A stretch of 64,000 bases of DNA from Ministeria vibrans ATCC 50519 (GCA_943704425.1 CALSCP010000425.1:8909-72908), one strand, 5' to 3'. Shown: positions 980 to 44,152, counted from the first letter of the stretch. Numbers and translations are program-made. Notes: generated from the sequence alone by a model not told the origin.

Positions 980-3900
980 ATCCAATCACACCTTGTCCCC
1001 GTCGACAGCCTCCCGCGTGCGCTGTGGCCGCACAACGCGACGCGCGCCGACTTTGTGCGTGAGACTTGCTCGCACTTGGAAGGTGTCGAGCAACTGCCCA
1101 TCTGCCACGATCCAAACCAGTTCCTGCGCACCTACTCCGCCGTCATGAGGCGCGCCGGCACGCCCGACGTCTCCCCGTTTGTCGTGCAGCTGCTTGTGTC
1201 CAATCTCATGCGAAAGGCCCATCTACGTCTCGACTTGCCAGTGCGGCGCAAGCTCGCCATGCTCGTGCACTTGACGACGCTGCAGAGCCCCCTGCCCCAC
1301 ACGTCCGGCTTGTACACGAGTATACTCAGCATTTTTGCCGAAGACCCCAAGTTCATGGATGTGGACGCGTACCTAGAGCTGGTGAGTCTCTTTGCCGTGC
1401 CTCATCGCGGTCCGGCGCTTCTCACCCTGTTCCAGTGCGTCGAGCGTAGTCCGCGCGCCACCGTCGACACCGCCCACAGCGTTCTCAATGTCTTCCCGGA
1501 CGCCTTTGACCCGGTCGTTGCCTCGGCATTCGTCAAAACGGTGGGCGCCAAGACACGTCAGACAATGCACGGCACCTTCACAACCCAACTCAAACTCGAC
1601 ATCCTCCACTCCATGGTCGACGCCATCCGCTACCTCGAAACCCATCCGACCTTTCAACACACCCAAACAGCACTTGACTGGCTCCACATTCTCAATACGG
1701 GCCACCGCATTCGCGCCAACGCCGACGCTGTCCACCTCCTCAACCAGCACGGTCTCACACAGGGCCTTGAACTCAACCCCCGCCTTGCCAGCGTTGCCCT
1801 TCTTGCCTGCTCCATCCAACTCACAAACAACAAATTCACCCATGACTCTCTCTCCCGCTCTGACTTTGTCCGCCTCCGCCAGTTCTTCGCAGACTATCTT
1901 TCCAGCGTAAACGAACCACTGCCGTCGGAAGACCCGCTCAGCGAGAGCTACCGTCCCAATCAACCCCAACATCAACCCCAACAACATCAACATCGTCGGT
2001 ACCCGGCTCCTTATCCCTTAAACAACAACAGCACCAACAACAACACCACCACCACCACCCACAGCACTCTGTCGCTTGCTCCAACAACAATCTCTCCGCC
2101 ACAGCGAGATCCCATCTTGGTCCTCCGTGACTGTCTGCGCAATCTTCCCGCATCCGGAAAGGAACTCTTCTCCGTCTCCACCGTTTCTCGTGCACTCACC
2201 CCTTTCCTCACTGAATGCATCTACAACCACGACCCCGAAAGTTTTTTTGACGCACATGCTATCCATCGCTATCTCATCATGGCCTCACGCAAACGCCACT
2301 CTCCCTATCCTGCCGCTGTCATTCTCTCCGCTGTCATGACCGCCCAACCGCAATTCATCCCTCTTGTCGAATCCACATCCGATCTCTTTGGTGCCCAACA
2401 CGCCTACTACACCCCACGTGAGTGGCTGAGTGCCCTCCATGACTGCGACTTTAAAATCCTCTGGGAAGGACGCGCCGCCCGTCGTCTCTGGTTCATGCAC
2501 GCTATCAACCTTCAACTTCGTCGCTACGACGTCTCCTCGCTCACCCGCTCTGTGCCTCTCTTCACCTTCATGGATCGCCACTGTCTCATCCCAACCTCCT
2601 CCGACGAATACCGTTCAGCTGCCACCGAATGTGAACAATCCAATGGCTCTGATCCCTTTCAGGCAATTGCACTCCATCCGGACACCCTCGAGTCGTTTGC
2701 CGAGCTCACGCTGCGCACGGGCGACCTCACTCGTGCTCAGTCCTTTGTCTCCCTCATCCACAACTTTTATCTGCCCACCATCACTCCTGCCCTCGCCCGT
2801 CTCACTCACCTTCTCCATCTCACCTCAGACCCCACCACTTTAGTCGAGGCGCTCGTCAACAGTGCGCCCCACCACCCCGACAACATCATTGCTCTCCCGT
2901 CCGTCTTCCCGTACCTTCTTCGTCGCGCCCACTTTGCCAAGAAGTCCGAAAGCGCCCTTGACGACACCCTCGTGGGCTTTGCCTACGCCCGTCACTACGG
3001 CCTCCCCGGCTACGACCTCTACCGGCGTGTCATCCGTCTCCTCCCGGGCTTCCGCGTGCGTCTCTCCTCACAGGCCCTCGCCGAGTTTATCTACGCCACT
3101 CCGCACGCCACGCCGCTTCTTGAGCAACAGACCCACTTTCCCTTTGACATGTTCGACGACGTCAAACAGCTTTCGGACAAGGGCTTGCCGGCTCTCGTGG
3201 CACTTCTTGTGCGCGGCCAAGTGACCCTCTTCCAGCAGATGGCGTCGCGTCTCACCCAACTGCGTCGTTTCCCTCTCGCCCTCGAGCTTATCGACGCGGC
3301 AAGCCCCTCTGGGCCATCGCCTTTGGTTGTCGCGACCATTCACGATGTTCTCTTGCCCTCCTACGCTCAGACAGGCGACACACAGACCGTCTCCACCATT
3401 GTCCAAGCGAGCCTCACCGTCCTCGACGAACCCCCTCTCTCCATCTACGCCTCCGGCATTGACGCTCTCCTGCGCCACGACCATCTCACTGCCGCTCTTG
3501 AACTCTTCCGCTCGGCCGAGCAACACGCAACAGAGCACCCATCCCTCTTTGAGGCCATGCCCAAATTTGACGTGTCCCTGCGTGATCGTTTTGTGCGTGC
3601 CTGTCTGGAACACACCCAACCTGAGACCACCCTTATCTCGACTACTAGTAGCAATAGTGGTGTTGGTACTAGTCCAATTCCTTCCTCTTCCTCGTCGCCT
3701 GACGATGCCCTTCACGTCATTGACTCCCCTCTGAGTCCGCTTCTCCCGTCCTCTTCCGACTGTGATCCAGACGATATCTCCCTTGGCGCTCTCTACTCCG
3801 ATGTACTTTACTTGGGGCTGCGCAATCTCCGGCACCGCACCCTCCCCTCCACATCACACGCCGAGTCTACCCTCGCCCGCTTTAAGGCCTACCTCGACGC

Positions 3901-30384: not shown

Positions 30385-33300
30385 ATGAAGGTTGCACTGG
30401 CGGTTGTTGCTGCCGTCCTGTTCGCTTCGGCGACAAATGCGACGTTTCTCTCGGGCCACGTGTGGTACGAGGTGGACCACGCCTCCGCCTCTGCCTGTCG
30501 CGAGGACGAGAAGCGCGTTCTCCTGCACACCCAGTCTGTTCATCGATCCGAGACGGACTGCCCTACCCAGGCCATCTTTGGCGATCTGAGCATTGCCGGT
30601 AAAACAGACCCAAAATATAATTAAATTATTATTATTATAATTATATACGATCGACTAATCTTATTATTATTATTGTTATTATTCTTTTAGCTATTCCTAC
30701 GATTAGCGTCGCCTCCACCAACGGAACCACTGCTTGCGTCGGTGCCCATTCCATTTGTGTCTCGACCAAGCACAGCTACCAGCTGCACGCCAGCGGCTGC
30801 TGCCGTGGCGAGGGCCTCGCCAACGTGGCCGCCGGCTCGTCTTGGCAAGTGCCCTTCACTGTCGATGTCCGCGACAACGAGTTCTCCGCCTACGTCGCCG
30901 CATCGCACGCCATCGAGGTTGTGCGCTCGTCCACTTCGGACATTAGCCACTTCCGTGTGCCCTTTGTCGTTGACCAGGAGCGCGCCACGGCAACCGTCGT
31001 CTGCGCCAAGGACCGTGCTGGCCATTGCCTCGACGCCACCATGAACATTGCCTCCAAGATTGAGCATGTTGGTTCGGGTCTCTTCGCCTGGAACACCGCC
31101 GGCCTCAAGGAGGACACCCGCTACGCCGTCGCCATTCAACTCGGCCGTCTTGCCGTCTTTGACACCGTCCTTCACCTGCGCACCGCCTCGCTCGAGACTC
31201 CCTTCCTTGTCACCCCCGCCGACCACATGTCGCGTGTCAACTCTTGTATCGAGTCGAATGAGCCCGTCCACATTGATGTCGCCGGTCGCACCTTCTCCAA
31301 GAAGTCAAGCGTCGACGTCAAGCTTGTCTCGCAGCTGCCCGCTGGCGCCACTTTTGACGGTGCTCGCCTCAGCTTCAGCCCCGTCGCTCGCAACACCTTT
31401 GTGGCCGTGCAGTCCATCGAGAAGAACTCGGCTGTGTCGGGTCCCATCCATATTGTTCATGTGCGCCGCGCCGCTCCCGTTGCCGACGACATGGCCCCGG
31501 CCGCGTCGGACGCTGAGCTCTCGCGTCACGCTCGCTCCACCTTCACCGTGAAGCTCTCCGAGACTGCTCCCTCCACCGATCTCGCCGAGGGTGACTCATA
31601 CAACGTCCAGGCCAGCACCGACCCTGTCAGCGAGTACGACTCACTCCAGTCGTTCACCTACCAGGTTGCCAACCTTGACGACACCAACTGGCTCGACGTC
31701 AGCGCAACCAACCTCATCTCAGAGGGTCTCGTCAACATCCAGGACATCCCCTTCCTTCGTGTCAACGCCCTCACTATCGGTAACATTGTTTCCTCCTACC
31801 GTCGCATCAAGTTCCGCGTGCGCGCCGTGGGCTCCGACAGCACCGAGGTGTTCTCGCGCGAGATCATCTTTGACTTTGACGCCGGCGAGTACATTCTCCT
31901 GCAAAACACCGAAATCGAGAACTTGGCCTTTGGCAAGCAGGTCTTCAACTACTGGTCGTACCCCAGCGAGGGTAACTTCCAGGATCAGGCCGTCTCTATG
32001 TTCCGCGTCGTCTCCACCGAGCCCGAGCGCCGTGACTACCTCGCCGGCCTCATCAGTGACGCCTCCTCTACTCAGATTCAACTCGATGCCCTCGACGTTG
32101 CCGGCGTCGACACCTACTGGACCGTCAACAACCAGTACGTTCGCATCACCTTTGCCACCTCGCTTATCTTCAACGCGGCTACCTTTGAGTCCCAAATCCT
32201 CGCCATTGTCAAGAGCGCCCTCCTCGCCCACGGTGGCCTCTCCAACGTGGCCGTCAAAATCATCTCGACCACCATCACTGGTCAGCAGAACCCCCAGAAT
32301 GTTATCGTGACCGCTCGCGATGTCATCTCGGGCGCTATTGTCGACTCAAGCGTCATCATCTCGTCGCTTTCTTCGGCCGGCGCGGCTTCCGGTACCTGCG
32401 GTGTCTTCTCGTCTATGACCGACTCGTCCAACTTCTGTCCCATGACCAGCACCCCCGTCAACCCGGGCTTCACTACCATCCAGGCATCCATCAAGGCTTT
32501 CCTCACCCACGACGTCACGACGTCGACCGTCAAGTATCTCGGTGGTGGCCGCATCGCCACCAGCGACGAGAGCGCCCTCTGGAACATTAAACAGACTACC
32601 GTCGCCGACCCGGCCACCGAGGACCTGCCCTTCGTCGCCTCGGACCGTGTCAAGATCTGCATGCAGTCCAACTCAACTCGCTGCCTCAAAGCTTTCTTCA
32701 ACACCGCTACCAGTACGTGGTCATTCTCCATTGCCAACGACGCCGATGCGACGGTCTTTGCCCACTCGACGAACCGCGAGTTCTGGCTCACCGATGCCAA
32801 CCTCAACGTTGCTGGTTCCGCCTCGGATCTTAACGAGTGGGCGTCGCTCCGCTGCGGCCCCACTAACGCCGCGCAGAACGCCGAGAACGTTCTCGAGTGC
32901 ACCAACCTCGATCTGCGCCCCACCTACCGCCGTCTGGAACTCGATCTTCTCGGTGAGTTCGGCATTTCGACGCTCACCGTGCGTCTCGGTAACTACCCTC
33001 TTCCCGTCCCGTCCGGCACCGGTCCCTTCCAGAACCCGCTGGCGTCGTTTTTGCCCAACCGTCAGGCCGATTCGTCGCCCTACATTTCCCGCCTCGAACT
33101 CTGGGTGCGCAACAACGAGAGTGAGCCGTGGATCGATCTGACCGGCTCCGAGAACCAGTACGACGCCAACGGCGGCGCCGTTTTTACCAAGGGTACCACC
33201 TGCGTGAGCGCTTTCAACCGCGAAGCATGCGATATTGAGTTCCTCGTCGAGGGCTTTACCCGTGAGGTCCTTGACAAGCGTGCCAACTTTGGCTGGCGCT

Positions 33301-36300
33301 ACATCTCCGTCCGCTTTGCCCAGATGAACTCCTTTGGTGATGTCCGCAACCGTTACTACTCGGTACGCGAGCTCCGCGTTACCGGCTACTGCATCTGCAA
33401 CGGCCACTCGCGCACCTGTGACACCAACACCGGCTTCTGCTTCGTCGAGGACAGCGGCAACAAGGATATTGTCCAGGACTGCGGTCACTTCACCACGGGT
33501 ACCTCGTGCCAGTTCTGCCAGCCCGGCTACCGCGCTGAAATCCAAAACGACGCTCCCACGTCGTCTTTCAACTGCGACAGCGAGGATTTGGATCACCAGT
33601 GCGATGGTCCTCTTCTGCCCGAGATCACCCCCGTCGAAATTGAGGCTGGCTCCTACACCTACAACGGCCAGTCGGGCGCCATTGGCGCCACCCGCCCCGA
33701 CCAATTCCAGGTCTTCTTCCCCCCCACGGGTCCCTGCGTTCCCTGCGCTTGCAACACCCACTCCATCTTTGACCTGTGCACAGACTCAGACAAGCGTAAC
33801 TGCCCCGAGGGCTGTGCTTTCGACACGGGCGAGTGCAACTGCGACACCTCGACCAACACCGAGGGCTTCAGCTGCGAGACGTGCATTGACGGTTTCTGCC
33901 GTGCCTCGTGCAACGCCACCGAGGGCCACCTTGCCTACGAGGTGTGCCGCGAGGAGGTGTGCACCGCCTGTGACTGCAACTTGCACGCCGTCGTGAAGAC
34001 GAGCAGCGGTGCCGACACGTGCGACAAGGACTTCTGCGGCTGCCACTGCAAGGCCGACGACCACGCCGTCGGTCCCCACTGCGAGTTCTGCGAGAATGGC
34101 TACTGGAGCAACAAGGGTAACTCCGAAGATGGCACCAACTGCCAGCAGTGCATGTGCAACGGCCACAAGAAGTACACCAACACGGACAATGTCGACGAGT
34201 GCAACGCCACCGGCGGTCACTGCATGTTTGACTACAACGGCAACACGCAGGAGTGCGATGGCAACACCATGGGTGCCAACTGCGAGCTGTGCAAGCCCGG
34301 CTACTTCCGTCCCGTCGACAGCAACGGCAACGTTGACCTTACTGACGACTGCTCGCCGTGCGCGTGCAACCAGCACGGCCTTGCCACCACCTATCCGTCG
34401 CACGGCTGGACCGTTGGCACCACCGCCGTGTGTAACCCTGATGGCGGTATCTGCAACTGCGACCCCAGTGACCACGTCATGGGCGACAACTGCGAGGCGT
34501 GCCAGGTTGGCTACTGGAACAACGAGGCGGGCGGTGCCCGCAACGGTGCCGTCTGCCTGGTGTGCCAGTGCTACGGCCACAAGTCGTACGCATTTAACGA
34601 GTGCGCCGTGCTCGGTGGCAGCTGCGAATTGGACTACGACGGCAACGCGCAGCCGTGCAACGATCACACCGACGGTCAGAACTGCGGTGGCTGCGACGCT
34701 GGCTACTACCGTCCCTTCGTCGGCGGCGGCACCATTGATCGCGCGCAAAACTGCACAGAGTGCAACTGCAATGGCCACGCCACATCGACCGTCACCACCG
34801 GCGAGGAATTCTGCACCGCCGACGGCGGTGAGTGTGCTTGCACTGGCACATCCAACTCGGAAGGTTTCAACTGCGAGTCGTGCAAGGCAAACACCTGGAG
34901 CACCCAGGGAGATGCCCAGAACGGCGTTGATTGCGCCCCGTGCGCCTGCTACGGCCACTCGTCAACCTGCAACAACTTTGGTGTGTGCTCGGGCTGTGCC
35001 GACAACACCGAGAACGGCGGTGATGGCCGCTGCGAGAAGTGCATTGCCTCGAACTACCGCCAGAACCACGATCTCTACACGAACGCCGACCCTGATGCCG
35101 CCACCCCGGATGCCGCCCAGGTCGAGGCCATCAAGTTTGAGGACTGCTCGCCCTGCCAGTGCAACGGTCACTCCAAGGCTGACCCGAACACGGACGACGG
35201 TATCTGCGACCCTTTCACTGCCGTGTGCCACCAGTGCGGTGATTGGACTGCCAACGGCCCGCTCGGCCAGTGCGAAGTGTGCCAGTCCAACTACTTCCGT
35301 CACATGACCGGTGTCTACGACGCCTCGGCCGACACGTGCCGCGCCTGCGATCTCGCCGACGGTACCAACTGCCAGCTGGACACGGTTACGAGCTCGTGCC
35401 GCCCCTGCGAGCAGCAGTGCTTCGGCACCGGCAACAACGAGTGCACCATGGATACCGGTGTGTGCACCAACTGTCCGGCCAACACACACGGCAGCCGTTG
35501 CGAACTGTGCGACGCTGGCTTCTACGGCAGCCCCGCCAACGGTATCCCTTGTGTGCCCTGCAAGTGTAACCACTATGTCGACGCCGGTACCGGCACTGTG
35601 CCCAACGCCTACAACTCGTTTGAGGCCAACTTCCCTAATGCCATTGATGCGTACCTTAAGTGCGCTTTTGACAACGGCATTGCCCAGCCCACTCGCTGCA
35701 TCCTCGACGAGTCCCTCCTGAACCCCACCACCATTGCCCAGCTCCAGGGCTCCGCCGACCACAGCGCCTTTATCCGCTGCAACTGCCCGCGCCACGACCC
35801 GACCAGCATGCAGGGCTACTCGGGCATTGCCTACGACGAGTCAGACCGCCAATGCGCCGCCTGCAACAACATGGCCTACTTTGGCCGCCCGGCCGTGTGC
35901 AGCGACGACTCCGGCAACGACGCGCTCATCGCCGATGGCTCGTCAGCTGTTGGCTGCGAGGGCAACGACTTCTACCCGTGCATTGCCTGCGTGTGCAACA
36001 ACAACATTGACCCCACGTCGAGCCAGAACAACTGTGCCGCCAAGCAGGACTCGGGTGCGCTCACCTGCACCAACTGCCTTGGCCACACGACCGGCATGGA
36101 GTGCGACGTGTGCGAGGACGGCTACTACGGCATGCCCACGAACCAGGCGGTCAGCGGCTCGCTCAACGGCAACACCTTCACCGGCTTTGTCCTTGACAGC
36201 AACGGCGACTCGCTCAAGTGCTGGAAGTGCGACTGCAATGGCCGCGCCACCGACCGCCTGACGGGTGTCAGCGACATTGCCGGTGACATGTGCACCACCA

Positions 36301-39147
36301 CGAGCATCAACACCTTCACCTGCAGCTGCGACGCTTCTCTCGGCTACACTGGCGAGCACTGCCTCGAGTGCCTCCGCGGCTGGGAAAAGGTTGAGGACAC
36401 CCACCCCGACTCGACCCCCGACAACTACATTACCTCGGCGGGCCGCGTCTACTGCCGCCCCTGCGACAAGTGCGTGCGTGATGTGATCGAGCGTGACATT
36501 GTGCCGCTCGAGGCTAGCATGGGCCGGGCTCTCGCTGGCATTGCTCAGCTCAACTCGACTATTTCCTCCGGCAACTTTGGTTCGGGCGGCGGTGGTGTGA
36601 CTCCCGCCCAGCTGGCGGTAGCGGTGGCAGATCTGCGCTCCGAGGCGGACACCGAGTCGGATCGTGTCGACCTTGCCATTTCCACTGCCTCCAACAACAT
36701 TCTCACTGCCATTGCTGCCGAGGCGAACCCCATCAAGGCTGACGTTGACGTTCTGAAGACCGCCGTTGCCAACCATTCCGCGGCCATTTCGCAGCTGCAG
36801 TCGAGCCTCTCGGCGTTTATGACGTCTTCAGCGGCAAACCTCAACGCCCAGATTGCCTCCTCAAACTCGGCTCTCGCTGCCCTGACCGCCAGCTTGAACA
36901 ACAACTCGGTTGCTATCCAGGCTGCCGACTCACGCATCACATCTGTCGAGACGGCGCTCACCACGGCCAACTCGAACACACAATCGCAGCTTGATGCCTA
37001 CGTGACGAGCAACAACGACGCGCTCAACACCCTTTCGAACAGCCAGACAACGCTCGCGAACCAGGCTTCCGACAACTACGACGTGCTCGTGGCCGAGATT
37101 CTCTCGCTCAAGTACCCCAACCTTGTGCCCGCCGGTGGCCTCAACCTCATTCCGCTCGCGACCGCCAGTGGTAACGCTGTGCTGGCATGCGGCCGCCTCG
37201 CTGGCCAGGACACGGCGATTTCCCTCTCGGGTGCCTCGGGCAGCTACTTTGACATTGCCATGCCGGACCTTGCCACCAACCTGCCCAACTTTGGCTCGTC
37301 TGGATTCACCATGACCGCGCATTTCAACACGGTCGGCACCACCGGTTACATAGTGTCGCAAGGTCTTGCCGGCTCGAGCACCACACGCTACTGGGGCATC
37401 TACATTGACCTCAACCGCCCGGCCGTCTTCATCTACCTGCGTGCCGGCGGCGCTAACCTGCGCTACATCATCCCCGTCTCGACGGCGCCCACGCAGAACA
37501 CCTGGCACCACATTGCCGTCAGCGTCGACGTGGCCCTCAACAAGGCGGTCGTCATGCTCGACGGCTCTGTCGTCGGCTCGATGGACATCACGTCGCTGCC
37601 ACTCTTTATCAAGAATGACGCTCCTATCCGCATGGGTGCCCGTCTCGACGGCTCCTTCCGCTTCAACGGTCTCATCGAGGACGTCCGCATCTACGACCGC
37701 GCCTTCACGCCCGCTCAAGTTGCTGCTGTAAGTGTTATAACAATTATGATTTAATTTATGATAATGCACGTCAATCAATTTGTGTGTATGTGTGTGTGTG
37801 TCTTGTCTGCTTTCCAACGGGAACTTTTCCGTAATGTTTTCAAGTGGGTGTCAGTGTTTTCTCGAATGGGAATGAATTATGATTGAAGCCGTCGTGTGAA
37901 TATGACATTGATTGATATATTATTGTGAAAATTAGGCTACATCGATGACTGTGACTGGCATTTGCGTCTAAGCCCCGATGATGATGAATTAAAGAGAGAA
38001 AAAAAACAAGGAGAGAAAAGATTAAGAAGGGCAATAGAGAGAGGAAGAAATTTTTGAAGTGAAGCGAAAGAGGAAACTTTTTTGGTTTTTCGATATTCTA
38101 TCACTTCAGAGGCACATAAGAATATTGATTTTATTTTAATCGTGCATTGTGTCTGTACATGTGTGTGTTCAGGTGCGCACAATGACCGTTCCAAACAGTC
38201 TGACCGCGACTGCGCTCTCGACCGGCACTGCCTTCCTGGGACTGTCCTTTGTGCAGTCCCGCCCAGTCCCTCAGATTGGGTCGGGCGGTGCGCTAACGCT
38301 TGATCTGTGGTTCCGCCAGAGCACAACCAACAATGGTAAAAATCCATGTGCCTTGTGTGTGGACAAAAAGAGTTTTTTGTTTTTTTTTTTGGTTTTTTGT
38401 TCGGCTCTTTTTTTGTGAATGTACTTGCAATTGAGAGCGGGAAAGAAAAGCTGTGACTAAAATTGCCGATAAGAGTGGGCATGAAAAGAAAAAGACGATC
38501 ATCAAAATTAAGTGTATTAACATTTTCCGTCTGTGACTGTTTTTGGTTAGGATTTGTTGTGATCAAGTCGGATGATTCTGACGTGCGACACTACGGAGTG
38601 TTTAGTGAGAGCAGCACTGACTCTCTTGTCTTCTACTATTTGCCGGTGAGTTGTGCTCTCTGCTACTTTGTTGTTCATGTGTCCTCCTCTATCACTTTGT
38701 TTCTTTCTTTTCCTATCACCTCTTGCTTCTTTAGCAGTACATGTCCCACTCAATGTCAAATTGTCAACTTTTAGAGCGGATCTGCCAATTTTGATGAAGT
38801 GCGATTCGATGTGTCTGCGAGCCCACTGGACGACGGAGCAATGCACAACGTACCAATCTCAACCCATACCATTATTTTCCTCTTTAACTATCGTTGTGTA
38901 GGTGATTGTGCGCACCAAGGGAACTCAGATTGACGTGTGGGTGGACGGCGTGATGATGAGTGCGACGCTGAGTGCCCCCGTGAGTGACAATGCGACACTG
39001 GGCGCGTCCATTGCGGGCCGTAAGCCTGGCGAGGGTCTCTTTGCCGGCTGCATTGCGCGCGTTGACATGTACCCCGGTGCCCTCTGCGACGCCATTGTCA
39101 CTGCCATTCGTGGCGCGACCCCTACCTCGCCCAACGCATGTGCTTAA
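30385..39147 (+). CDS. Secreted laminin-like protein of about 2,600 aa (signal peptide, unique N-terminus, LamNT, 13 LE repeats, coiled coil, 2 LamG-like domains)
   Basis: Exons at about 30385-30598, 30691-37727, 38173-38335, 38551-38645, 38775-38849 and 38902-39147. Motifs: YYSVRELRVTGYCICNGHS (LamNT/LE junction), repeated CxCNGH..C..G..C..C..GYY, heptad region, and WHHIAVS..FNGLIEDVRIYDRA. Confidence 0.9.
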
Positions 39148-39578: not shown

Positions 39579-42500
39579 ATGGACGACGGCAAACCGTGGC
39601 GACTGCCCACTGGAAGCGCACGCAAGCTCAAACACCCCCAGCCACCGTAAGATGACTAAGAGCACCATGTACAGTCGTGCGCTAGTCTCCTTCTTTCTCG
39701 ACCTCCTATTCATCGTTTTTCCTTTCGCTAAAATCAAAATATTTTTCAAAAAAGTATCAAAAAAGAAAAGATTCAAAAATTCGTGTCACTGTTTGTCCAT
39801 TTTGCGTCAATTTACAGGGTGAATCTTTGCACCATACCCTTTCTATTTTCCAATGTATCCGTTGTGCGGCGTATTTGAGTCTCTTTCGCCCCTCACGCGT
39901 TTAAAATGGCTATTCGAAAAATTTGAAACATTTTTTCGAACTTGACTCACGTCTGAACGGCCGTAGAATGGACGAGAAGAGTCTCCAAGAGAAGATTGGG
40001 ATCTATGTGCGTCTGAGGCCTGTGTTTGGGGCGGAGGAGGAGCCCAGCATCCGCGCAATCAGCGACACAACGATCGCTCTGTCGCCACCGCACGACTCCA
40101 AATACGCAACGAAGCGCAGCGGGAAGAAGGAGTACGCGTGCACGGGGGTGTTTGGCGCAGACGCGGGCCAGCACGAGGTCTTCCGCGACACGACGCTGGC
40201 GCTGGTGCAGGGGCTCTTTGACGGCATTGACGGGCTGTTGTTTACGCATGGCATGACGGGCTCAGGCAAGACCTTCACCATCGAAGGGCCCGCCGACAAC
40301 CCCGGCCTGCTGACCCGCACCCTCAACTACGTCTTTGCATCCATCCACGGCACCCAAGGACGCTCCGCCCTCGTCCAGCTCAACGACAACAACAGCATTT
40401 TCCTGCGCGAGCCAGGCGAGGCCATAGCCGAACGGCGCGCCCAACGCGAGCGCGACCGTCAACAGCAGCAGCAGCAGCAGCAGCAGCAAGGAGGGAGCTC
40501 AAAGAAACGCCAAGTGCGTTTCATTGCAGGCGACTACGAAGACGACAGCAACGCCCTCTACAGCGACCTCCTTGAGCAGCCCGACGCGACGCCCGCCACG
40601 CCACACCCGCACCACCGCCACAGCCACCGCTCGCCATCCACCGACGCATTGTCGTCGCAGCAGGTCGACCGTGACTACGCCTACTTCATCTTTGTTTCCT
40701 ACGGCGAGGTCTACAAGGGCTTCGTGTACGATCTGCTCGGCGAGGCACCGCGCAGCAAACAACTGCCCATCAAGGAGGACAAGGACCGCAAGAACTACAT
40801 TGCGGGCCTGACCCAAGTCGAAGTCAAGTCGGTCACCGAAGCACTTGCTCAGTTGCGCATTGGTCAGCGCAATCGCCAGGTTTCCTCTACGCACCTCAAC
40901 GACGCATCGTCGCGCAGTCACGCCGTCTTCACCCTCAAACTCATCCAACTGCGCCTCGGCGACGTGTCGCCCGACCAGACGGGTCCTTTCATCCTGCGCG
41001 GTGCACACACCGAGTTTCACATGAGCTCGCTCAGCTTTATTGACCTTGCCGGATCCGAGCGCGCCGACAAGTACAGTGGCATTGGCAGCAGCATCAACAG
41101 CACGACGGCCCACGCACCCACGGGCCACAGTGCCAGTCTTACCCCGGCAGAGCGGTCGCGCCAGCTCAAAGAGGCAAACAGCATTAACCAGTCTCTCACC
41201 TATCTCAGCGTCTGCTTCAACTTCCTTGCCAAGTCATCCTCGAGCAGTGCTTCCGCCTCTCTGTCCTCTCTGACAAACCCCTTTCGCAACTGCAAACTCA
41301 CAATGCTCTTCAAGAGTCACTTTCTCGGCAACTCCAAGATCCGCATGATCATTTGCGTCAACCCAACACCCGCTGCGTTTGACCAGACGTACGGGATTCT
41401 GCAGTCGGCCATGTCTATCAAGGGCGTCACTACCATGAAGGCTCAGCCAGTCTCACGTGGAGCACCCACTGGTGGAGTGAGCACCGCTGGAAGTGCTGCT
41501 GTGAGTGGAGGGAAGGGCGCAAGCTCTAGCAGTGGTGGTCGTGTGGACGACCGGTTTCGCGTGAGCAAAGGGAAGAAGATGACTATCGTGGACAAGAGTG
41601 TTGCTGCGATGATGACGGTAAGTCGTGGTGGAACACGACTGTTTAGGTTGCCACAGAGGGGGGCAGGGAGTGCAGTGGAGCAGAGATTGGTGGGACGAGA
41701 AGAGGAGGAAGAAGATGAAGAGGAGGAAGATGAGGAAGAGGAGGAAGATGATGATGGAGTGATGACACAGAGACAGGAGATTGAAGAGGGACTGCGATTG
41801 ATGGAGGAGGATAATGAGGCAATGGGCTTTACTGGAACTGAGCAGGGACGACCCTCTGTGGTGTTGGAGGAGAAGCGACGACAGATGGAGAAGCAGCGGT
41901 ATGAGAAGCATAAGAATCTGCTAAAGGCGACGGCGGAAGGAATGCGCGAAGTCGAGCGGGAAATGGAAAAAGAGAAGCAGGTGAACACGGAGATTCGCGA
42001 GCAGTACCGGCGCAAGATGGATGAAGGGTCGCGGACGATTGCCAAGTTGCGTGGTCAGGTCGCCCAGCTAGAGATTGAGTTGGAGGAGGCGAAGAATGAA
42101 CTGCTGGTGGCAGTGACCAATGCGGAACGGAGTCGCGCGCAGACGGATACACTTCAGGCGGACCTCAAAGGACGCACGCGGGAGCTGCAGGCGGCGAGGG
42201 CGCAGTGTGACGCACTGGAGAGTGAACGGGATAAGATGGATGCACAGCGACAAATTGCGGAGGAGCGACGAATGGAGGCGGAGGCGAAACGGGCAGATAT
42301 GCTGGGACAGGTGCAGAAGCAAGGACATCTTGCGATTGATGCAATGGAGGAAATGAAGGCGGAGCGGAAGAAGGAAAAGGCACAACTTGAGCAGGAGCGA
42401 CTGGAGCAACTGGACGAGGTGGAGCGCATTCGCAATGAGATGCAAGTGCACTACGAGCGAGAGCTGCGCGAGCTACAAATGGCAATGGAACACGACAAAC

Positions 42501-44152
42501 AAGTCCTCCTCGACAAGTACAACGCGCTCAAACAGCAGCAACAACATGGACAGCAGCAGCAACAGCAGTATGACACGCCTACTTCAACACCAAAATCGCT
42601 CCGTCGTGCGCAAGATAAGGTCAAGAAGGCACTCGTGCGCTCGAGCACAAACCCCATCTCACGCACAGTGCACCACAACCCCACCACCATGGACACCCCT
42701 GGCACTAATCCTTCTACCCCCACCATTCTCATGCCTGTCATTCCAAACTGCAAGACCATTTCCAAGTCCCCCAAGATGAAGGACCTGCGCACCCCTAAGT
42801 CGGCTCTGCAGCACACAAACTACACTCTGACGCACCATCCCACTGCCAATGTCACCGAACATGTCCATGGCAAGATCACTCCCAGTCTGTCGCGCACTGG
42901 TAAGTACAAAGAGAGAAAAAAGTTTGAAGAGAGAGACTAAGTGAGTGAGAGAATACAATGTGATTGTACTTTCACAAAACACGATAAAATTTTATACTTT
43001 TTTAGGCAAATCCGTTGTGTTTGTGGGAACGGAACAACACGTCAGAACACGCCTAAGCACAGGAAATGGTGAAACAAGCGAAGAAGAACAAGAAGAAGAA
43101 GAAGAAGAAGGAGAAGAATTTGAAGTAGAATCGGAAGAAGACGAGCCATTGAGAGAAATGAGACCCACTAGGAAGAGACTCGCAAGTGAGTTTGAGCCGC
43201 TGTACAGTTCAGATCGGTAAAAAAAAAAAAAAAAAGAAGACACACAACATCATACTTAGTGCACATATATGTTGCATGACTGTGCAATTAATATTATAAT
43301 CATATTATAACATTCAACATTCAAAAAAAAAAAGTCATGATTATCATTGGGAGATCCGAAATCATCAATTTTTATTGTTTTATCATTAAATTTATTAAAT
43401 TTATACGATTGTGTAGAGTGAAACGGACCAAAACAGTAACACCAACAACAAAACGACCGACAACACGATATGACGGACGAGAACAATATCAGCAGTACAT
43501 GACAGACGAAAATGCAGAGGAGTCAGCAGAGGATGAGTCACAGAGCCGGTATTACACTCCAAATGTGCAGCGCACTGTCACTCCCAGTCAGCAAAGGTCT
43601 CTTCGCTCAAAAGTAAGTCTCATTGTATTAAGTATATTAGAGGATCTTATTCATCAATCAAAATTGTGATAAACATGTTTCTCATTGCGTCGCATTGTCT
43701 TTTTTGCTTTCATTGTGTCTCATTGAGTACTTCATGGGTCTGACTGTGTCTTTTTTGCTTCCATTGTGTCTCATTGAGTACTTTATGGGTCTGACTGTGT
43801 CTTTTTTGCTTTCATTGTGTCTCATTGAGTACTTCATGGCCTTATTGTGTCTTTTTTGCTTCTCGTTGTGACTCATTGTGTCGAATTTTGTCTCATTAAG
43901 AGTTTCATTGTGCCACATAGTGTGGAACTTACTCTGCCTCATTGTCTCTCATTGAGTTTCACTGTGTCGCATTGTGTCTCATTGTGACTCTCCCAATATA
44001 TTCATTGCCCCTGACACAGCTCTCTTTCTCCCCTTCCTCCTACACAGTGCGAAAGGGGTGTGCGTGGCAACGGCACTCTCCCTCCTAGCGTGGGTTCCGT
44101 CTCCTCCTCCCCACTCAACCATCAAACAAAGTCGGTTGGAAAACGCATTCTG
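39579..44152 (+). CDS. KIF23: Kinesin-6 family, MKLP1-like
   Basis: P-loop GMTGSGKT, long loop-6 insert typical of kinesin-6, NDASSRSH, DLAGSER, coiled coil, and a tail (TILMP..YTLTH..GKSVVF) resembling the MKLP1 Arf6-binding domain. Confidence 0.82.
43697..43880. repeat. 51-bp intronic minisatellite (about 3.5 copies)
   Basis: Unit TGTCTTTTTTGCTTTCATTGTGTCTCATTGAGTACTTCATGGGTCTGACTG in head-to-tail copies. Confidence 0.9.

Follow-up and report, generated by a model that had tools for sequence, protein, structure and literature searches.

In this study, we describe a laminin-like gene of Ministeria vibrans ATCC 50519 in a window of 64,000 nucleotides (nt), the whole stretch of DNA analysed (GCA_943704425.1 CALSCP010000425.1:8909-72908). 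The gene occupies positions 30385-39147 of the window on the plus strand and comprises six exons with a coding sequence of 7830 nt, encoding 2609 amino acids (aa). An earlier note, made from the sequence alone, had reported a laminin-alpha-like domain order here, and its coordinates and landmarks proved right, with the gene starting at the ATG at 30385. The gene is a member of a small and so far unrecognised filasterean family, present in at least three lineages, that combines a domain resembling the laminin N-terminal domain (LN), laminin-type EGF repeats (LE), a cysteine knot and a coil, and we slightly favour the view that its product is a secreted, cysteine-rich extracellular matrix (ECM) or adhesion glycoprotein forming a disulfide-knotted coiled-coil oligomer, with an LN-LE-knot-coil core common with laminins. 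The features of the gene are as follows.

30385..30598, plus strand: exon 1, with the ATG start, the putative signal peptide (about 30385-30432) and the first mature residues; GT donor at 30599
30599..30690, plus strand: intron 1, 92 nt, AT-rich, GT..AG; once it is removed, the flanking exons read on in frame (214 nt + 2 nt)
30691..37727, plus strand: exon 2, the main exon, 7037 nt, from the N-terminal extension to the first laminin G (LG)-like domain
30691..32741, plus strand: N-terminal extension, about 640 aa, no recognised domain, conserved in the family from about 31542 on
32742..33392, plus strand: LN-like domain, a beta-sandwich of galactose-binding-domain type ending RYYSVRELRVTGYC
33390..36455, plus strand: LE array, about 13-15 laminin-type EGF repeats, some with inserts
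36453..36473, plus strand: cysteine junction CRPCDKC, the eighth cysteine of the last LE repeat and two extra cysteines entering the helical region, as read from the sequence
36474..37109, plus strand: heptad region, about 210 aa, rich in A/S/L/N/T and poor in charge
37203..37727, plus strand: LG-like domain 1 (LG1), a ConA-like jelly roll of Laminin_G_3 type
37728..38172, plus strand: intron 2, with an in-frame TAA at 37752-37754, 8 codons in
38173-38335, 38551-38645, 38775-38849 and 38902-39147, plus strand: exons 3-6, a probable second and weaker LG-like domain, ending in a TAA stop

Exons were searched one by one, and the six-exon model rests on splice sites and phases in the DNA. Exon 2 lies inside a 2309-codon open reading frame (ORF) at 30825-37754, the frame being open over 30621-37754, and its donor reads GCT GCT/GTAAGT with the intron starting at 37728. 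Exon 1 encodes MKVALAVVAAVLFASA (then TN), which, judged by eye, has the n/h/c-region pattern typical of the signal peptide that had been noticed there. The six exon translations contain 11 NxS/T sites, and no transmembrane (TM) segment or RGD motif was found in them, nor is there an R-x-[KR]-R site anywhere in the protein. The LE array is matched by Pfam EGF_laminin (PF00053, E 6e-25) and EGF_LMN_ATRN (PF24973, E 5e-28) in 10 stretches at ORF residues 856-1885; its 13 CxC..H-type repeat starts agree with the 13 repeats counted in the earlier note, and its 120 cysteines correspond to about 15 LE repeat equivalents. No match to Laminin_B (L4/LF, PF00052) was found in the 2309-aa exon, in line with the reservation that these domains are missing.

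The array ends in the CRPCDKC junction, a candidate interchain disulfide knot. It has been reported that the laminin coiled coil starts with three interchain disulfides (PMC6744579), and the two cysteines past the last LE repeat fit this position, as the reading of CRPCDKC as a cap had implied. The heptad region, first estimated at about 200 aa, has an a/d hydrophobicity score of 0.59 versus 0.46 +/- 0.03 in shuffled sequences, a difference of about 4 standard deviations, with mostly I/L/V at a and mostly L/A/I at d. A Gly-rich break lies near its start (ORF residues 1916-1927), and Pfam returned weak coiled-coil-type matches only. The domain that follows is clear, since LG1 matches Laminin_G_3 with E 4.7e-21 and 75.9 bits (cut-off 27.6) and Laminin_G_2 only with E 0.0057. 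Thus, of the two LamG jelly rolls initially perceived, the first stands and the second is weak, with exon 6 matching Laminin_G_3 at E 0.0027, under the Pfam cut-off; the reservation that the G domains look pentraxin/TSPN-type agrees with their Laminin_G_3 type. Exons 3, 4 and 6 show a weak but collinear alignment with LG1, and a second LG-like domain in exons 3-6 is probable.

The domain immediately ahead of the LE array is certainly a galactose-binding-type beta-sandwich, and it is probably, with good confidence, a diverged LN domain. Its terminal landmark YYSVRELRVTGYC corresponds to 33354-33392. In phmmer searches against PDB sequences, RYYSVRELRVTGYCICNGH was aligned to the LN-LE1 junction of netrin-4 (E 8.8e-9), laminin alpha5 (9e-7) and laminin alpha1 (3e-6), with further matches at the same junction in netrin-1, laminin beta1 and laminin gamma1. 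A family profile matched laminin beta1 with E 1.3e-15 over the last ~55 LN residues and LE1, a score to which the LE repeats add; overall, the PDB alignments from phmmer and hmmsearch span the last 15-55 residues of the LN-like domain together with LE1. Foldseek placed LN-LE structures at ranks 1-28 for a model of the LN-like domain with LE1, and netrin-1 LN at ranks 1-7, ahead of CBM32, for a model of the LN-like domain only; LN structures also align over the largest number of residues (151-163/242). We infer LN homology across the whole domain. The LamNT-type domain that had been claimed is supported by the junction alignment and by the Foldseek ranking of low-confidence models, and not by Pfam, as discussed below.

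Homologues are few. Among 1.84 billion representatives, HMMER with the LN-like domain retrieved five proteins only, namely two from Pigoraptor chileana, Capsaspora CAOG_06077, one ENA metagenome fragment and one Logan transcript (SRR24111719), and a word search added Pigoraptor chileana P0001. These relatives share the N-terminal extension, the LN-like domain and an LE array of about 14 repeats, and the nearest kin are filasterean proteins with 30-41% identity, supporting the non-animal holozoan source that had been supposed; Capsaspora CAOG_06077 is 41% identical to the window gene over the LN-like domain and LE array, and Pigoraptor chileana proteins show 33-38% identity, values too low for Capsaspora to be the source and making a Pigoraptor unlikely. 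No description of the family was found in the literature searched. Two paralogues were identified in the Ministeria genome itself (29.7 Mb, 2860 contigs). Members for which the region after the junction could be compared are listed below.

Window gene: about 210 aa of heptads after the junction, followed by Laminin_G_3 domains
Paralogue C857 (G000:C857, L015), whole 7894-nt contig, minus strand: N-terminal extension, LN-like domain, LE array, CEPCPQC junction, about 340 aa of A/S/T/N-rich heptads, one EGF domain and Laminin_G_2
Paralogue C439 (G000:C439, L011:1329-8552), minus strand: 80% identity with the window gene between ORF residue 240 and about residue 1870; EGF repeats at the N-terminal side and a tail of EGF, an unknown domain of about 200 aa and EGF repeats
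Capsaspora owczarzaki CAOG_06077 (XP_004345667.1; L017:501-7241, Capsaspora KE346369.1): single exon, CDPCDNC junction, then about 690 aa with a cysteine three residues before the C-terminus (...PQCNL) and no LG domain
Pigoraptor chileana P0001 (EukProt, Opistho-2@31748): about 74 aa after the junction, then three EGF domains and a canonical LamG (Laminin_G_1/2)
Logan protein P0006: about 750 aa after the junction, including a C-terminal TM anchor

The two extra junction cysteines are kept in every full-length relative except one paralogue, and the C-x-P-C-x-x-C motif followed by heptads occurs in five members (this gene, C857, Pigoraptor P0001, Capsaspora P0003 and P0006), while the helical length after the junction ranges from about 74 to about 750 aa. 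C857 and Pigoraptor P0001 both carry EGF and canonical Laminin_G_1/2 after the coil. In the family tree only the window/C439 pair is resolved (support 96/96), with the window copy on a much shorter branch, and C439 appears to be a recent duplicate whose tail has been replaced; since a protein 80% identical to the window gene has a quite different, EGF-rich tail, tails are swapped within the family. The ends of the C857 contig overlap in the LN-like domain, the same ~35 residues standing at both ends, which suggests a collapsed or circularised assembly artefact. The N-terminal extension, which the earlier note had singled out as long and unique, has no Pfam match at E <= 10 over its ~640 aa and no informative match in the Atlas (none above 0.87); its alignment with C439 begins at ORF residue 240 and that with Pigoraptor P0001 at residue 316. 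Window positions 31515-31545, exactly at the onset of the C439 similarity (ORF residue 240), read LSRHAR/STFTVKLSE and contain a minimal RxxR site, a possible processing site or module boundary.

Compared with animal laminin alpha chains such as LAMA1 and LAMA5, the window protein has the same order of signal peptide, probable LN-type sandwich, LE rod, two extra cysteines, coil and LG-type jelly rolls, and the motif that links its sandwich to LE1 is that of laminins. However, the ~640-aa extension before the LN-like domain has no laminin counterpart, Pfam does not recognise the strongly diverged LN-like domain, the L4/LF domains are absent and the coil measures ~210 aa versus ~570 aa in laminins, as had been cautioned. 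Beta and gamma partners accompany laminin alpha chains, whereas no beta/gamma-like paralogue with a matching coil was found in the Ministeria genome. The laminin-alpha layout originally suggested is thus upheld for the order of LN-like domain, LE array, cysteine cap, heptads and LG-like domains, and not for the tail, which lacks laminin relatives, or for the chain partners. Because L4/LF are missing, the coil is short, the G domains are Laminin_G_3 rather than five LG, partners are lacking and sequence kinship is limited to the LE repeats and the junction, the window protein is not a canonical laminin alpha chain as that family is defined.

Other comparisons point to parts of the same design. 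Capsaspora CAOG_06077, annotated only as hypothetical or as "Laminin EGF-like domain-containing protein", shares the N-terminal extension and the C-x-P-C-x-x-C junction with heptads; its layout is, as judged from the sequence, beta/gamma-like rather than alpha-like because of the ~690 aa after the junction, the C-terminal cysteine and the lack of LG, and the terminal cysteine recalls the C-terminal disulfide of laminin beta1/gamma1 (PMC6744579). Pigoraptor P0001 shows 33-37% identity to the window protein over its N-terminal extension, LN-like domain and LE array and also has the junction motif and a C-terminal LG domain, but its next cysteine comes about 74 aa after the junction, and it ends in three EGF domains and a single Laminin_G_1/2 in place of two Laminin_G_3. 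The LN-LE supradomain is also found in netrins and usherin, and it is netrin-1 and netrin-4 that match the LN-like/LE1 region best in structure and sequence; netrins, however, combine three LE repeats with an NTR domain, versus ~13-15 LE repeats and no NTR match in the window protein, and usherin consists of LamGL-LN-LE-FN3 repeats. Neither has a cysteine knot and coiled coil.

The assembly that we propose for the window protein is the following. After entry into the secretory pathway, chains would associate in the endoplasmic reticulum via the heptad region as a parallel alpha-helical coiled coil, and interchain disulfides at the CxPCxxC junction would lock them together. Two spare cysteines per chain are as many as a three-chain knot requires, and a dimer linked by two disulfides would be just as compatible with them; the residues at a and d do not tell a dimer from a trimer. 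No coil paralogous to this heptad region was found elsewhere in the genome, and because a partner coil is lacking there, the likely state would be a homo-oligomer, either dimer or trimer. Two own-genome coiled-coil matches, C883 and C690, were considered as partners and rejected, C883 being a charged ORF of cytoskeletal coiled-coil type. The oligomer would resemble a bouquet in which several LN-like/LE arms, with the LE repeats acting as a rigid rod, fan out at one end, opposite a cluster of LG-like domains. The LG-like end might then bind cell-surface glycans or receptors, and the LN-like/LE arms might bind matrix or neighbouring molecules.

A number of results weigh against a common core with laminins, and those on the head of the protein concern whether it is LN at all. 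Pfam Laminin_N (PF00055) found no match in the exon 2 translation even at E <= 10; HMMER with the LN-like domain retrieved no laminin, netrin or usherin among the representatives searched; and comparison of the LN-like family profile with individual LN sequences by hhalign gave no significant match, with probabilities of 0.4% for a Haliotis laminin beta1-like protein (P0015, LN truncated) and 2.5% for the usherin-like LN of the same genome. AlphaFold models of the domain, built from ten sequences, were of low confidence, with a predicted local distance difference test score (pLDDT) of 52.9 with LE1 and 55.3 without, and in VIA-align Z scores CBM32 and IFT25 tie with or exceed LN. The nearest clusters by Atlas language-model features were F5/8-type C and DUF5000, not Laminin_N, although F5/8-type C and Laminin_N share the galactose-binding-domain clan of Pfam. 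The Pfam, Atlas and VIA-align results favour the alternative that the domain is not LN but a CBM32/discoidin-like carbohydrate module, the protein being an LE-rich secreted lectin without kinship to laminin heads, and neither the PLENGE polymerisation motif nor the LN CxxC motif (PMC8388930) is evident in the sequence by eye. We regard this alternative as quite improbable, as the last strands and the ...YY.v.el.v.G.C.C.GH junction match laminin/netrin LN-LE1 with significant E-values, Foldseek ranks LN first even for the model without LE1, and the LN alignments are the longest in residues covered. In addition, to our knowledge the position directly ahead of LE1 is the context of LN in all known families. 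The other end of the gene model is exposed to a separate doubt, namely that exons 3-6 are unexpressed or belong to another transcript and the protein ends at the TAA at 37752 with a single LG-like domain. Were intron 2 retained, translation would indeed terminate after LG1 at this stop, which lies in frame 8 codons into the intron; exons 3-5 by themselves have no family match and exon 6 falls under the Pfam cut-off, and the exon 3-6 tail, whose joins are predicted from the DNA, is common to no relative. Such a model artefact nevertheless seems unlikely given that canonical GT..AG sites with compatible phases join exons 3-6 into a single uninterrupted frame to the TAA, that exons 3, 4 and 6 are collinear with LG1, and that the region has an exon-like GC content distinct from the AT-rich introns.

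Other results against a common core concern the tail. A word search with the last LE repeat, the coil and LG1 returned four multidomain Laminin_G_3 proteins only, none of them a laminin; laminin alpha chains have five Laminin_G_1/2 domains versus one or two Laminin_G_3 here; the heptad region reaches about one third of the length of the laminin coil and is unusual in consisting largely of uncharged A/S/N/T residues; and C439 has neither coil nor LG domain despite its 80% identity. A rival reading is that the protein is a convergent domain shuffle, in which a pre-existing LN-like/LE module, of a type that the usherin-like gene also contains, would have independently acquired a generic coiled coil and a ConA-like lectin domain, so that the likeness to laminin is architectural and not ancestral. 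The wholly different tail of so recent a paralogue, the spread of helical lengths after the junction, the non-laminin Laminin_G_3 proteins as nearest relatives of the tail, the absence of L4/LF and the N-terminal extension all fit such a history, and promiscuous domain shuffling is known for ECM genes (PMC5560861). On the other hand, a two-cysteine junction with heptads is present in all full-length members but one, at the position of the laminin disulfides (PMC6744579), the LN-LE1 junction is laminin/netrin-like in sequence, and common descent accounts for four features in identical order more parsimoniously than their separate assembly would. Because tails have demonstrably been exchanged within the family, the convergent shuffle stays a serious rival, although we hold it to be clearly less probable than the common LN-LE-knot-coil core. 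A more far-reaching proposal, to which we likewise give rather little credence, is that the family is a surviving pre-metazoan lineage ancestral to laminin chains, which would already have formed disulfide-knotted trimers with LN-type heads and LG-type ends and would have served in a basement-membrane-like pericellular matrix during aggregation, alongside collagen IV NC1, integrins and LARGE-type glycosyltransferases.

The strong bias towards C-ending codons that had been noticed in the gene is real, with C at third codon positions (C3) at 0.59 and A (A3) at 0.03, versus a C3 of 0.34 for the kinesin next to it. In Capsaspora and choanoflagellates, the optimal codons in highly expressed genes are those ending in C (PMC6188563), thus high expression of the laminin-like gene is a reasonable inference. 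This downstream neighbour, a kinesin-like ORF at window positions 39923-42940, contains poly-Q and acidic runs. Elsewhere in the genome, the following genes with ECM-related domains were found.

G000:C233 (L009 from nt 3723), plus strand: usherin-like gene with Laminin_G_3, a weak Laminin_N, LE repeats and many FN3-like repeats (by eye)
G000:C372:34129-34714, minus strand: collagen IV NC1 (PF01413), 88 bits, above the Pfam cut-off, one locus
C1856, C1535, C2497 and C716: LARGE-type Glyco_transf_49 (GT49), matches above cut-off
G000:C932 (L020:4792-9879), minus strand: EGF-rich protein of Crumbs/agrin-like content, including one receptor L domain and a pair of canonical LamG domains

The Laminin_N match of the usherin-like gene reaches 17.7-20.3 bits, under the cut-off; the frame of this gene stays open for at least 2092 aa, and a word search with its LN returned two proteins. 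C932, with EGF and two LamG domains, was considered as a member of the family and rejected. In animals, LARGE-type enzymes make the LG-binding glycan on dystroglycan. Outside animals, type IV collagen has been reported only from Ministeria vibrans (PMC13366479; bioRxiv 10.1101/2023.10.18.563013), and the NC1 locus accordingly points to M. vibrans or a close relative as the source of the genome. LamG-domain genes were among those examined in a study of M. vibrans aggregation (PMC13366479), and Capsaspora CAOG_07351, a secreted LamininG-domain protein, is upregulated in aggregates (PMC3870316).

Several papers treat laminins as an innovation of metazoans, and one places laminin in the set of core families specific to animals (bioRxiv 10.1101/211789). 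According to two others, Capsaspora has no laminin homologues, or no secreted laminins (PMC3753549, PMC4582122), although the individual domains are present in it (PMC3753549). That the present family went undescribed in these papers would be explained by an LN-like head that is invisible to Pfam. A filasterean laminin-like family bears on the question of whether laminins truly arose in animals. If the family is truly homologous, the long-arm design of laminin is older than animals and co-occurs with a collagen IV NC1 gene in one genome, and if it also represents a pre-metazoan lineage ancestral to laminin chains, laminin is not an animal innovation. Given homology, the origin of the basement-membrane toolkit would become testable in a culturable unicellular organism.

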